64,000 bases of DNA from Salpingoeca rosetta (GCA_033442325.1 JAWQFM010000001.1:203376-267375); one strand, 5' to 3'. Counted from the first letter of the stretch, positions 25,798 through 31,700 are shown. Notes: a model not told the origin generated them from the letters alone. Numbers and translations are program-made.

Positions 25798-28700
25798 ATG
25801 GTGCGGGCGTTCAAGTCGGCAATGGCGATGCTGCTGGCGGTGGGCTTGGTGTGCCTGCTGCTGGGATCCCCCGTGGCACATGCACAACAGACGCTGGCGC
25901 GCCGAGTCTCAACCACAATTGTTGGCTTTGGGTCCCTCACCATCTCCCAGTCATCGTCATCCGACCCAGCTACAGTCACGGTGAGTTCGCCACCGAGGGA
26001 GGATCGAGGGGCAAACAGAGCGCGGCAGGCTGCATGTCGATGCGAGAGAAGCGGCAACCCTGTTGCGTCGCGGGCGCCCACCTCTTGTTTGGTCGCCTTT
26101 GATTCGACTGTATGCAGCACGAAATCATCCCCCTCGTTATTTGTGTCGCACATCTGTTTATTTGTATGCATGCCACCGTCTGCATGTCTGGATGTGTGTG
26201 TGTGTGTCTGTATGTGTGTGTGTGTGTGTGTTTTCCCCTCACCCTTCTCGGGGGCTCTCTTGTTTGCTTGTATATGTTGGGTCAATAGGTCAACATCACC
26301 AACAGCGCCGTGGACAACTTTGGCATCTATCAATTCCAGAGCGCAAGCTGCGCCAACATCGGCAGCATCTTCAACCCAACTGCAATCTCAGGTGTGTGTG
26401 TGTGTATGTGTGTATGTGTGTATGTATTTGTGTGTTTGTATATGTATGACTGTGTGCGTATGTTTGTACCCTTGTGTGCATTTGCGCGTTGCACAGCTTC
26501 GCCGATGGCACATGGACTTAGGCGGACACAGCTGCGTCACCCTTGCTTTACCGCTTGGGTTTTGTTCCAGTCATCATGGTCGATCTGGCGCCTGTTACTC
26601 CCCCTCACACTCACTCACTCACTCACTCACACTCACTCACTCACTCACTCTCTCACTCACTCACTCACTCACTCACCCACTCACCCACTCACCCGCACAC
26701 TTTGCCTCTTGTACTGTTCCTCTGTTGCGTGTTCCATCAGGGTGCACGGCAAGCTCGTGCCCCGTGGGGCAGTTGTCGGACCGGTATGCGGAGTTCAACA
26801 CCTCCATCACCGTCGTTGACCAGGACTTGACCTTGTTCGGCACTCACACCGTCAACGGTATGCACCCTCCGTCCCTTTCCCCTTGCTATTTATCTCCTGC
26901 TCACACTCGCACACACGCACATGTTCACAAAACACTCACCTCACATGTGCTCACCACACAATCACCTTACCTCATCACACACACATCACACTCACACACA
27001 CACACATCACACACACACACACAGGCCGTAGCTTTGTGGTTCGCAACGGCACGACGGTGCTTGGCTGCGCCAACATTGGGCCACAGCCGCAGTGCTCTCC
27101 AACAGAGTATCGCGTTGCTGCGCAGACGGCGACAGCTGCCGTCTCATGCGCCTCGTACACGTTCTGTAACCGCCTCGTCGAATATGAGGTAACATTACAC
27201 ATGCACGCGTGTGTGCGTGTCTATGTCTACGTTTGTGTCTGTGTTTGCGTTTGCGTCTGTGTCTGCGTTGCGCGCACGCGTGTGTGTGCCTGCATCTGCG
27301 CTTTCACCCCTTGCTTCCTCTCACGCTAGCCCGCCCTTCCCGCGTCTCAACCACCACCACCACCACCGCCGCCACCGCCGCCATGCAGACTGTTGCTGCG
27401 ACGCCAACAACCGACCGCGCGTGCCAGAAGTTCCAGACGAGCGATGCCGCTGCTGTCATCATTCAGGGCGTGTCCAAGACGGCATTCTTCGATGTGGAGC
27501 GCGAAGCACGTGCATCCATTGAAGAAGTCTTAGAAGCGAACACCAACCAGAACCTCTCTGTTGCCATCCTCCGTCGCTTGTTTGCAAACGTGAGTCAATG
27601 ATTGCACGTAAGGGTTGGTGTTGTTATTTGTTTTTGTTTTTTTATTTGTTTGGTGTGTGTGTGTGTGTGTGTGGGTTGGGGGGGGGGAGGGTGTAGTGAC
27701 GGTTCTTGTTGCCTGTTGCGGATGTGCATGTGCATGTGCATGATGAGCAGAATCATTCACACACATTGCGTGGGACAAGTTGCATGTCACTTACCACTCC
27801 ACAACAACAACAACAACAACAACAACAACAACAACAACAACAACAACAACAACAACAACAACAACAACAACAACAACAACAACAACAACAACAACAACAA
27901 CAACAACAACGTCACGTACTAACTCCTATCCGTGTGAATGCGTGTAGGGCACGAGCACGAGCACGCCCAGCGCGGATGTTGTGCTTGAGATTTGGATTGC
28001 TGCCGTTGACACGGACACTCGCACCCCACTCACGCGCGCGGCAGTCACAAGCGCGCTCACAGACCTCGAGGGACAAACAGCAGCGTGTACGTTGTTGCTG
28101 GCGGTGGTGATGGTGTTGTTGTTGATGGTGTTGTTCTTGTCGTGTCACCCCTGTTCTTTGGCCCCTGCTGTTGAATGGGAACTGAAGAGTAACTGCACCT
28201 CCACACACACACACACACACACACACACACACACACACACACACACACACACACACACACACACACACACACACACACACACACACACACACACACACAC
28301 ACACACACACACACACACACACACACACACACGCGCGCGCGCGCGCGCGCGCGTATGCGCGTGTGTGGCAGCTTGCCAGACGACGGTGCAGGTTGCGTGC
28401 GCGTGCAACACCAGTGCGGTTGTGCCGAATGCAACTGTTGGTGTTGACGGCTGTTTCTCCTTCAACAGCGGATCGTACTGCGTTCCACAAGATCAGGTAC
28501 TCATGTGTGTTTGTTTGTTTGTTTGTTTGTGTGCTTGATATTGAACTTGTTACTCACTTTCATTCCCCCCCCCACACACACACGCACGCACACACTCACA
28601 CACACACACACACACTCTCTCTCTCTCTCTCGCCCCTGCCCCTTCAGCAAAACTGCCCCAACTCGTTTCCGGCCACAACCGTTGATCTGAACACATTCAA

Positions 28701-31700
28701 GAACACGGGCCTCCGCTTCCGCAACTGTCCGACGACACACACAGCGACCAACTGCCTGGAGCAGCTCATGGCTGCTGCAGTGGTGGGCGTTGCTGCCCCA
28801 ACAGAGGTGACGGTGGATGACATCAGCATCCCAAACGTACGCACCCCGCCAGAGATACCAGAGAACCTGACGCTGAGCCAGCAGGGTGTGAACGCCCTTC
28901 GTGACGGGGCGCGCTGGTGGCGCAACCTCATCCAGCCAACCACGCTCCCGTACAACGACATCAACTACCAGATTCAGTACTACCGCAGCAACAGCGAGTT
29001 TGACATGTCGCGTGCGCAGACGGACGGCATCGCATACGGCCTCCCCTTTGCCATTATGGCCGGTGTCAGCCTGGTCCTGTTTGTGTTTTTGCCAATTGTG
29101 ATGGCCATCATGGCGTGCTGCCGCTGCTGCTCCTGCTGCCTGTGCCACGAGTGCTGCGGCGGAAAATTGGACCAGCAGGACCCCTCGCGTTCTAAATGCA
29201 TTCTGCTCACGGTCCTCACTGCCAGCCTGTGCGTGTGCCTCATCACGTTTGCCGCCCTCGTGGTGGCCGCGGACGCGCAAATGACCGCTGGCGTGGATGA
29301 CGTGGAGGCGGCGGCGGTGAGCGGACTCGACAACATGAATCTCTTCAAGGACAACACGCTGGACCAGGCTGAGGACGTGCCTGGCGTGCTGTTCCCCGTG
29401 GTGCTGGACGGCGTGTTTGGCCTTCTCGACACCCTCAACGCAGGTATTGCGTTTGGTGTTGTGGATGTCGTTGGCGAGGTGTCTGACACGCTGCTCACGC
29501 TGGTGCGGAGCCTTGCCGATGAGGTGGACACAAACTACGAGCGCATGCTTGACGTGCAAGCGCTGAGTCCCAACATTAGCGCCAAGTTGAGCGAGCTCGA
29601 GACAGCCCTGCAGGACCTCGACACTGCACACGAGGCAACCCGCACAGCATGCTACGCGGTACATGGCACAGTGTGTGTGTGTGTGTGTGTGTGTGTGTGT
29701 GTGTGTGTGTGCCTTGTGCGCGTGTGAGTTTGTTTGCTTTGCACACTGCTATGCATTTTCACCTTGCTTTGCACTCTCACGTGATTATTCTATTGCGCGG
29801 TCAACGCATCTCACACACAACACAACACAACGCAACACAACACGACACAATACACCATACACACCACACCACATAACACGACACGACACAACACAACACA
29901 TAACACGACACGACACGACACAACACAACACAACACATAACACGACACGACACAACACAACTGCGTGCTCTGTCGAGCAGAAAATGGACGCTGGGGTTGA
30001 CGTCATTTGTGATTCGTTCCTCCCGGGAATCCCAACGGACGTTCCGTCCTTCACGCTGGATGACGTGATCACGCCCATCATCGATGGTCTACAGATGATT
30101 CGTGACTCGGACCTGCGGGGCCTGGCCGACGAGGCCGAGGCAGTGCTCAACGACATTCCATATGAGGTGCAGGACCAGATTGACATGGTGACCTCGCAGA
30201 TCACCACAGAGGCAGCCAACGTGCAGGCCGACCTCGACAGTGAGATTGCGAACATTCGCCAGCAGGCGGACGATTTCACCAGCAATGACTTCAACATTGC
30301 GCAAAAGAAGGCGGACATTGCATCCACCTTCCAGAGCGCAGAGCCGTACGAGGAGTACAGGGCCATGGCGTCCAAGGCCATTGCTGGCGTCTTCATTGGC
30401 CTTGGCGCTCTCATCTTGATTGCAACCGTCGCTGGCGCGTGCTCGTACGACAGTGACCTCGACCCGACACAGCGCTCGTCTTGGTTCGTGTGCGAGTGCA
30501 CATGTGTGTGTGTGTGTCGTGTGTCTCAGTGTGTGTGTGTGTGTGTGTGTGTGTGTGTGTGTGCGGTGTGTTTCTGCGTGTGTGCGGTGTGTTTCTGCAT
30601 GTGTGCGGTGTGTTTCTGCGTGTGTATGTGTGTACATGTTGTGTTGAGCTTGCCACGTTGTAGACTGTGCATGCTACCTGAATCCTGTCGCTTCTGCCCC
30701 TCACAGTGCACATCATACACATGTGCACATCCCCCTGTTCGCCGGCTGGTTGTGACTGCACCGCTACAGCTCGGATGCGTGCGGTCGCGTGATTCTTGGA
30801 TCTGTCGGTCTGCTGGTCATCTTCAGCACGATCATTCATCTCATCGTTGCCATCCTCTTCATCATGGCTGCCGTCACGGGCAAGACCTGCGACAGCTTTG
30901 ACAACGATGAAGTCATTCGCATGGTGCGCACTTGATTGTTGTTGAAGGTTGTTGTTGTTGTTTAAGTTGTTGTTGTTGTTGTTGTTGTTTAAGTTGTTGT
31001 TGTTGTTGTTTAAGTTGTTGTTGTTGTTGTTGTTGTTGTTGTTGTTGTTGTTTAAGTTGTTGTTGTTGTTGTTGTTGTTGTTGTTGTTGTTGTTGTTGTT
31101 GTTGCTGCTGCTGCTGCTGTTGCTCTTGTTGTTGCTCTTGTTGTTGACGTTGACGTGGTGTCTGGCGCCGTTTCTTGACATTGACATTCTCTTGCGCTTC
31201 GAGATGTGCAGCTGGCATGTCATTCTCGCCGTCTCATTCACACACACGCTTACATTTCTGTTGCCCATGTGTGTCGATGTGTCAGGTTGCGGACCAGCCC
31301 GCGAATTGGGACAACAAGTACCTCATTCCATCCATGGTGCGTTTGCATATGGAGGCATATTTTGTGCTCCCCTCGTGTCTGTATGTGTGCTGTGTGTGTG
31401 TGCTGTGTGTGTGTGTGTGTGTGTGTGTGTGTGTGTGTGTGTGTGTGTGTGCGCGCGAGGCACCTGCCCCAAAGATTCTTTCTTTTTTTCCCCTCCCCAC
31501 CAATGATGGTGCAGCATTCCCTCCCTCCCACCCACCCAAACAAAAAACCAACCAACAAACAAATGGGCTTTTTACTCACACAAAAATTTTTGTTCCCTGG
31601 GAACGGCCCCTCCCCCCCCTCCTATCCCCCAAAGAAAAAAAAAAAAANNNNNNNNNNNNNNNNNNNNNNNNNNNNNNNNNNNNNNNNNNNNNNNNNNNNN

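Follow-up and report, generated by a model that had tools for sequence, protein, structure and literature searches.

A Salpingoeca rosetta prominin that very probably carries a metal-less superoxide dismutase-like barrel in a conserved N-terminal extension

In animals, prominin is known classically as a protein that marks and shapes microvilli and cilia. Choanoflagellates are the nearest living kin of animals and use a collar of microvilli for feeding, and the shuffling of domains is frequent among them. Here we describe the prominin gene PTSG_09622 of Salpingoeca rosetta, which lies in a stretch of 64,000 nucleotides (JAWQFM010000001.1:203376-267375, the window from here on, from whose first letter positions are counted) in an assembly of 55.4 Mb and 68 contigs. 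An earlier note on the window had read this locus as a prominin fused to a superoxide dismutase (SOD)-fold domain and Cys-rich modules. We conclude that PTSG_09622 is very probably one gene, coding for a five-pass prominin with an N-terminal extension of ~385 residues that holds a metal-less SOD barrel, Cys repeats and a SEA/MAD-like domain.

The closest described systems each resemble one part of this protein. Animal prominins (prominin-1/CD133 and prominin-2) share with it the 2+2+1 arrangement of transmembrane (TM) helices, the two large outer loops, the Cys cluster after TM1 and the tryptophan of TM5. They are ~780-900 aa long and, in the exon 8 search described below, align from their first 16-70 residues; they therefore have no comparable N-terminal extension, and these alignment offsets support the earlier statement that their N-terminal ectodomains are short, whereas the S. 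rosetta protein has ~385 extra residues made up of three kinds of module. Copper-less SOD-fold domains are already known from CCS domain II and from the N-terminal repeats of CSRPs, according to the sections of PMC13017621 that deal with them. On the same sections, the likeness of the S. rosetta domain to CCS domain II, CSRP repeats and SOD5 lies, taken together, in the SOD barrel, the disulfide, the lost zinc site, a short loop VII, an extracellular position and the lost copper histidines. A CSRP is described there as four to twelve tandem Cu-only SOD domains with short linkers and with some of the copper sites intact, a description from which the S. rosetta prominin departs in having one SOD-fold domain and no copper site. 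Further to that, CSRPs are tandem and either secreted or anchored by glycosylphosphatidylinositol, whereas the S. rosetta domain is a single copy on a polytopic membrane protein and has an extra invariant Cys pair. The CSRP sections of that paper cite Capsaspora as the unicellular example and make no mention of choanoflagellates. Finally, a ferredoxin-like fold close to the membrane of a cell-surface protein is found in PCDH15 MAD12, CDH23 MAD28, Notch HD and IA-2; compared with MAD and SEA domains, the corresponding S. rosetta domain, whose fold is taken from an orthologue model, has a Cys-rich insert of ~85 residues before its last strand and no detectable sequence similarity. Neither a prominin with a SOD-like N-terminal module nor the locus tag is mentioned in the literature that we searched, and prominin appears in a paper on the choanocytes of sponges only as a gene that went undetected in the transcriptome of the sponge. 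Each part is of a known kind and the sequences were already public; it is the combination that this literature does not describe.

The gene model was re-derived from the DNA. Eight phase-compatible exons had been proposed for the first part of the gene, and these were recovered with GT donors and AG acceptors throughout and with phases of 0, 0, 1, 1, 0, 0, 1 and 0. The start of the proposed span (25798-29660) is right but its end is not, as exon 8 stops at 29658 and position 29660 is the T of the donor GT. All of the sequence motifs quoted earlier are present in the per-exon translations. Exons 1-7 total 344 codons when taken from the raw sequence, and exons 1-8 (25798-29658) encode 681 residues identical to residues 1-681 of the public protein PTSG_09622 (P0001 in our set, 1206 aa; XP_004990049.1; UniProt F2ULI8), of which every exon translation is an exact substring. 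This exact match identifies the organism as S. rosetta, and the contig is no human one. When exon 8 was used as the query against 1.84 billion representative proteins (full HMMER scan), the top match was this same protein, 100% identical over residues 345-681, an offset equal to that predicted from the eight exons. Whole-protein tests were made on the public protein, the exons being otherwise searched one by one. Databases name it either 'hypothetical protein' or 'Rab-GAP TBC domain-containing protein', and its public Pfam annotation consists of Prominin and RabGAP-TBC only. The exons, together with intron 6, are as follows:

25798-25980, plus strand: exon 1, start codon, signal peptide (residues 1-29, ending AHA before QQ) and first SOD-like strands
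26289-26391, plus strand: exon 2, SOD-like, with FGIYQF for FHVHEF of SOD1 (G73, Y75), C82 and GSIFNP (I88 for H63)
26741-26857, plus strand: exon 3, SOD-like, with the extra pair C97/C102 and PVGQL (Q106 for the zinc ligand D83)
27025-27188, plus strand: exon 4, end of the SOD-like part (GRSFVVRNG, R141 for H120, C149 for C146), Cys repeat 1 and start of repeat 2
27389-27589, plus strand: exon 5, remainder of Cys repeat 2 (..TTDRAC) followed by the first half of the SEA/MAD-like domain (ferredoxin fold)
27948-28086, plus strand: exon 6, second half of the SEA/MAD-like domain
28087-28371, plus strand: intron 6, containing (CA)n at 28203-28332 and (CG)n
28372-28496, plus strand: exon 7, Cys-rich insert with invariant C304, C312, C314, C330 and C339
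28648-29658, plus strand: exon 8, end of the Cys-rich insert, last SEA/MAD-like strand (AAVVGVA), N-terminal outer segment of prominin, TM1, Cys cluster, TM2 and start of outer loop 1
29981-30483, plus strand: exon 9, outer loop 1 and TM3 (Pfam Prominin, 38.3 bits)
30770-30923, plus strand: exon 10, TM4
31286-31336, plus strand: exon 11, start of outer loop 2
32197-32319, 32586-32723, 32979-33053 and 33221-33292, plus strand: exons 12-15, remainder of outer loop 2
33473-33604, plus strand: exon 16, TM5 with the conserved tryptophan of DAWWF

Exon 8 and the later exons encode a true five-pass prominin. The Pfam Prominin family (PF05478, gathering cut-off 34.3 bits) is matched with 162.9 bits by the whole public protein and with 60.8 bits by exon 8 alone, which bears out the prominin core claimed earlier; the match spans profile positions 25-523 and resumes with further positions after the assembly gap discussed below. 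A hydropathy scan places five TM helices in a 2+2+1 pattern (residues 484-502, 533-551, 814-832, 863-881 and 1078-1096), in addition to the signal peptide. The Cys cluster after TM1 is present, and DAWWF at residue 1075 belongs to TM5, whose tryptophan (human W795) is nearly invariant across eukaryotic prominins (Bell et al., PMC10659291). Eight N-glycosylation sequons lie in the ectodomain, a glycosylatable one of the secretory pathway. In a six-frame scan of the 55.4-Mb genome only one locus passes the Prominin cut-off, and PTSG_09622 is therefore the only recognisable prominin of this organism.

The architecture, with its dead SOD-like module ahead of the prominin, is conserved in at least four other choanoflagellate transcriptomes, so that the search of other choanoflagellates proposed in the earlier note ended in the same order of parts in at least four further species. 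Complete transcript-derived open reading frames (ORFs) came from Hartaetosiga gracilis (P0002, 1337 aa), Salpingoeca infusionum (P0003, 1267 aa), Choanoeca flexa (P0004, 1354 aa) and Salpingoeca kvevrii (P0008, 1511 aa), and two further matching contigs from public sequencing runs (P0005 and P0013). In these orthologues the equivalent of exon 8 begins at about residue 345-460. An alignment of six sequences is collinear over the whole N-terminal extension, contains 15 invariant Cys and runs unbroken across the S. rosetta exon junctions, including those between exons 6 and 7, where the (CA)n intron lies, and between exons 7 and 8. A word-index search with this alignment returned the query's own protein and one unrelated match, and was uninformative on distribution. 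In the P0013 contig (SRR27710302) a separate ORF of 138 residues (125-541, plus strand) precedes the prominin ORF; the latter lacks a signal peptide, so that it may in truth begin farther upstream, or an intron may be present in the contig.

The homology of residues ~35-153 to Cu/Zn superoxide dismutase is well supported by sequence searches, and the SOD-fold domain named in the earlier note is found there both by these searches and in the fold model of an orthologue. On the public protein, Pfam Sod_Cu (PF00080) matches residues 45-148 with 24.4 bits (E 4e-5, cut-off 28.9), and weaker matches fall at the same position in two orthologues. A phmmer run on PDB sequences with the S. rosetta protein alone picked out 3ce1, a Cu/Zn SOD (E 8e-7), along with several others under 1e-3. 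When a profile was made from the six orthologues, it matched dozens of Cu/Zn SODs of solved structure at E values from 4.5e-11 to 1e-4, among them the Candida Cu-only SOD5, and its positions 31-152 span nearly the entire enzyme. Further to that, a domain from the same genome that passes Pfam Sod_Cu (33.7 bits) matches residues 45-143 with 32% identity and an E of 2e-12. Single-exon Pfam searches with the three main exons of the domain gave no match, and the six-frame Sod_Cu scan of the genome likewise missed them; this is a length effect, as the exons hold only 34-54 residues each.

An AlphaFold2 model was built for the orthologue P0005 with 13 aligned sequences. The mean pLDDT (the predicted score of the local distance difference test) is 63 over the whole model and ~75-85 in the SOD-like domain. 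The Foldseek check that had been proposed put SOD5 first (TM-score 0.70, target-normalised). VIA-align, which is independent of Foldseek, gave the same SOD5 a Z of 15.5, with a root-mean-square deviation (rmsd) of 2.7 A over 132 of 153 residues, followed by human SOD1 (Z 13.1), EC-SOD (12.8) and CCS domain II (12.6). As modelled, the domain agrees with the eight-stranded Greek-key beta-barrel of SODs and is nearest in shape to the extracellular Cu-only SODs.

Two large secreted proteins encoded elsewhere in the same genome also carry SOD-fold repeats in tandem (C14:756487-771900 and C7:1383779-1392000). The first has at least three such repeats and the second at least six, with summed Pfam Sod_Cu scores of 51 and 48 bits, respectively. 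One of these tandem-repeat proteins, an open frame of 5134 codons, also has Ig-like domains and a signal peptide. Nine repeats were examined and the copper His set is intact in none of them; the proteins look like CSRPs with every metal site gone.

One explanation of what the SOD-like domain does is that it docks other SOD-fold proteins in the manner of CCS domain II and SOD1, and would thereby fasten either the large secreted copper-less SOD-repeat proteins of this genome or a genuine extracellular SOD to the membrane that bears prominin. SOD-fold domains do pair, as in the SOD1 dimer and between CCS and SOD1 (described in the relevant sections of PMC13017621), and the nearest relatives of the prominin domain in its own genome are repeats of the two large secreted proteins (residues 45-143, with the identity and E value given above). 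Such docking would be a special case of the fused, non-catalytic barrel proposed here and not a competitor to the architecture. We regard it as unlikely.

The barrel has lost all of its copper and zinc ligands. The earlier note had claimed that all four copper-binding histidines were replaced while the disulfide cysteines remained, and HMMER alignments agree on both counts: H46, H48, H63 and H120 of SOD1 correspond to G73, Y75, I88 and R141, and C57 and C146 correspond to C82 and C149, which are invariant in six orthologues. In these alignments FGIYQF lies on FHVHEF/FHVHQF, GSIFNP on GPHFNP, PVGQL on HVGDL and GRSFVVRN on GRT(L/I)V(V/I)H. The copper-ligand columns contain no His in six of six orthologues, whose whole domains have 0-2 His; the ligands being missing from all six, they were lost before these species diverged. 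Nor does the zinc site (H63, H71, H80 and D83 of SOD1) survive in any of the six; S. rosetta has I88 at H63, an invariant Cys (C102) at H80, Q106 at D83 and no His in the loop. The D83 column has D, E or S in the orthologues, and Q, E or S in half of the six. What remains of the zinc loop contains a further invariant Cys pair, C97/C102, and the catalytic Arg that precedes the last Cys is absent. As all copper ligands have been lost, this SOD homologue cannot be a SOD enzyme, and from its residues the barrel would be unable to dismutate superoxide.

The conserved barrel and disulfide, together with the invariant C97/C102 in the zinc-loop remnant, could still be taken to mean that the domain remains a metalloenzyme, or a redox sensor, that uses non-canonical ligands. 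This we find quite improbable in view of how few His each domain has in the six orthologues, the empty H46, H48, H63 and H120 columns, the Cys in place of the zinc ligand H80, the substitutions at D83 in half of the sequences and the missing Arg before the last Cys.

Between the barrel and the membrane, the Cys repeat and the second Cys-rich piece described in the earlier note are both present. The repeats (C158..C176 and C182..C201) follow the pattern EY..A.T.T.DR.C and vary in copy number between species, with two in S. rosetta, three in S. kvevrii and at least four in the fragments P0013 and P0009; they match no Pfam family, even when the fragments with four copies are used. What had been called a possible SEA-like segment is, in the P0005 model, a ferredoxin-fold SEA/MAD-like domain of beta-alpha-beta-beta-alpha order, followed by the Cys-rich insert and then a final strand (pLDDT of the core ~80-89). 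The best structural matches to model residues 244-427 were two to PCDH15 MAD12 (Z 12.8, with an rmsd of 2.9 A over 104 residues, and Z 12.6), with CDH23 MAD28 (11.5), a CELSR1 domain (10.7), Notch HD (7.8) and IA-2 (7.4) as further matches. At ~10-11% identity, this is a resemblance of the modelled fold to MADs and not shown homology. The SEA self-cleavage motif GS[VI]VV (cut after G) was not found when residues 204-395 of the S. rosetta protein were read directly, and an ESM Atlas look-up with residues 200-305 gave a best value of 0.82, which is chance level.

Whether these parts belong to one gene is best judged from the public model and the orthologues together. The single gene claimed earlier is supported by the identical public model and by four complete transcriptome ORFs that are collinear across every exon junction, and a misjoin of two genes is very unlikely, as the complete transcript-derived proteins of four species keep the order of the parts. 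Nearly all introns of the gene hold long microsatellites, namely (CAA)n, (CA)n then (CG)n, (GTT)n or (GT)n, at sites that include 27808-27910, 28203-28332, 30940-31130 and 31900-32010, and these create spurious Cys/Val-rich open frames that swamp protein searches. A misjoin at the (CA)n had been named as one finding that would overturn the reading; it was rejected, the flanking exons 6 and 7 being collinear with orthologous cDNAs. The weakest alternative, in which gene prediction fused two neighbours (a secreted SOD-like Cys-rich protein, and a prominin starting at a Met in exon 8), can point to a Met that lies in frame ~40 residues into exon 8, with a short hydrophobic stretch after it, and to a public model whose 3' end looks wrong. 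It is nevertheless highly improbable and, judged by the sequences, close to refuted. The fusion is present in four complete transcript-derived ORFs and two further contigs, and the exon 8 Met is not conserved among orthologues. The hydrophobic stretch falls on the final beta-strand of the ferredoxin-fold domain, for which exons 5-6 supply the preceding strands, and invariant Cys stand on both sides of the exon 7/8 junction.

Several points weigh against the single-gene prominin with a metal-less SOD barrel. For S. rosetta itself, the evidence for a single mRNA consists of the public gene model and the orthologues. The Pfam Sod_Cu score of the S. rosetta protein lies under the gathering threshold. 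The fold model is that of the orthologue P0005, which is 37% identical over the exon 8 stretch, and comes from a 13-row alignment with a mean pLDDT of 63. Towards its 3' end the gene has an assembly gap and, after TM5, TBC-like exons, and function and localisation are inferred.

The doubtful part of the gene comprises three features:

31649-31747, no strand: assembly gap (run of N) inside the prominin gene, with poor-looking flanks at ~31470-31648
33645-34411, plus strand: doubtful 3' end of the public model, consisting of a filler exon at ~33645-33731 and RabGAP-TBC-like exons at 33940-34097 and 34327-34411
34776-34966, plus strand: candidate true last exon, with an acidic tail containing PPPY and a stop codon (orthologue match at E 0.16 only)

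At the gap, the S. rosetta model lacks ~100 residues of outer loop 2 that every orthologue has. Beyond it, 31748-31849 is a fragment free of stops whose phase fits that of the following exon; it is not part of the public model, and it gave no match. We suggest that the 3' end of the public PTSG_09622 model is probably wrong. The TBC-like exons encode positions 88-170 of the 216-position RabGAP-TBC profile, roughly the middle third of the domain, after which the model stops; both are well spliced, and the first of them scores 32.5 bits alone and shares 51-54% identity with TBC genes at other loci of the genome. No N-terminal TBC half was found near them, and no prominin orthologue has counterpart exons. 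A tblastn search with a paralogous TBC ORF was swamped by microsatellite CVCV repeats and added only the known exon. These exons may represent a fragment of a gene, a gene nested within this one, or an unusual but genuine 3' end. In the orthologues TM5 is followed by a basic juxtamembrane stretch and then by an acidic tail with a PPxY motif; a search 3' of TM5 in S. rosetta for an AG..GT exon that has the correct phase and a YFRR-type juxtamembrane motif found none. The UniProt name 'Rab-GAP TBC domain-containing protein' is due to the doubtful TBC-like exons, and the present analysis thus corrects a public annotation that rests on a doubtful 3' end.

At the other end of the gene, the upstream neighbour is POLD4 (DNA polymerase delta subunit 4; Pfam DNA_pol_delta_4, 34.1 bits), which lies at 24996-25457 on the minus strand and is divergent. 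Its start and the prominin start codon lie 340 bases apart, the two genes sharing 25458-25797 as their upstream region, and because POLD4 begins at 25457, position 25798 is a sensible start for the prominin gene.

Taken together, the parts suggest how the outer module may be built. Outward of the membrane, the order from the N-terminus would be a signal peptide, the metal-less SOD-homologous barrel, two Cys-bounded repeats, the SEA/MAD-like domain with its Cys-rich insert, and the prominin outer segment leading into TM1. By analogy, the barrel may serve as a non-catalytic structural or binding module, a role of the kind suggested for CSRP repeats without copper and for CCS domain II in the sections of PMC13017621 that treat them, and the Cys repeats and membrane-adjacent domain would act together as a stalk that holds it away from the membrane. 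Cholesterol-dependent localisation to membrane protrusions counts among the traits of prominins, and tentatively, by analogy with those of animals, the protein may be placed on curved protrusions of the plasma membrane, i.e. the collar microvilli. The binding or adhesion role on collar microvilli or the flagellum that the earlier note put forward is likewise conjectural. A more elaborate scheme, which we consider distinctly unlikely, would be a collar-specific surface system of metal-less SOD barrels, in which the prominin barrel docks the giant secreted repeat proteins of C14 and C7 and so links microvilli to each other or to the matrix, with a MAD-type domain as in the tip-link cadherins on stereocilia.

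Few SOD-fold domains reused without metal are on record, and the S. rosetta gene contributes a case that is membrane-anchored and single-copy. The prominin of this choanoflagellate is genuine and present in one copy, with a conserved and lineage-specific outer module, and this module gives a handle on what prominin did before animals arose.

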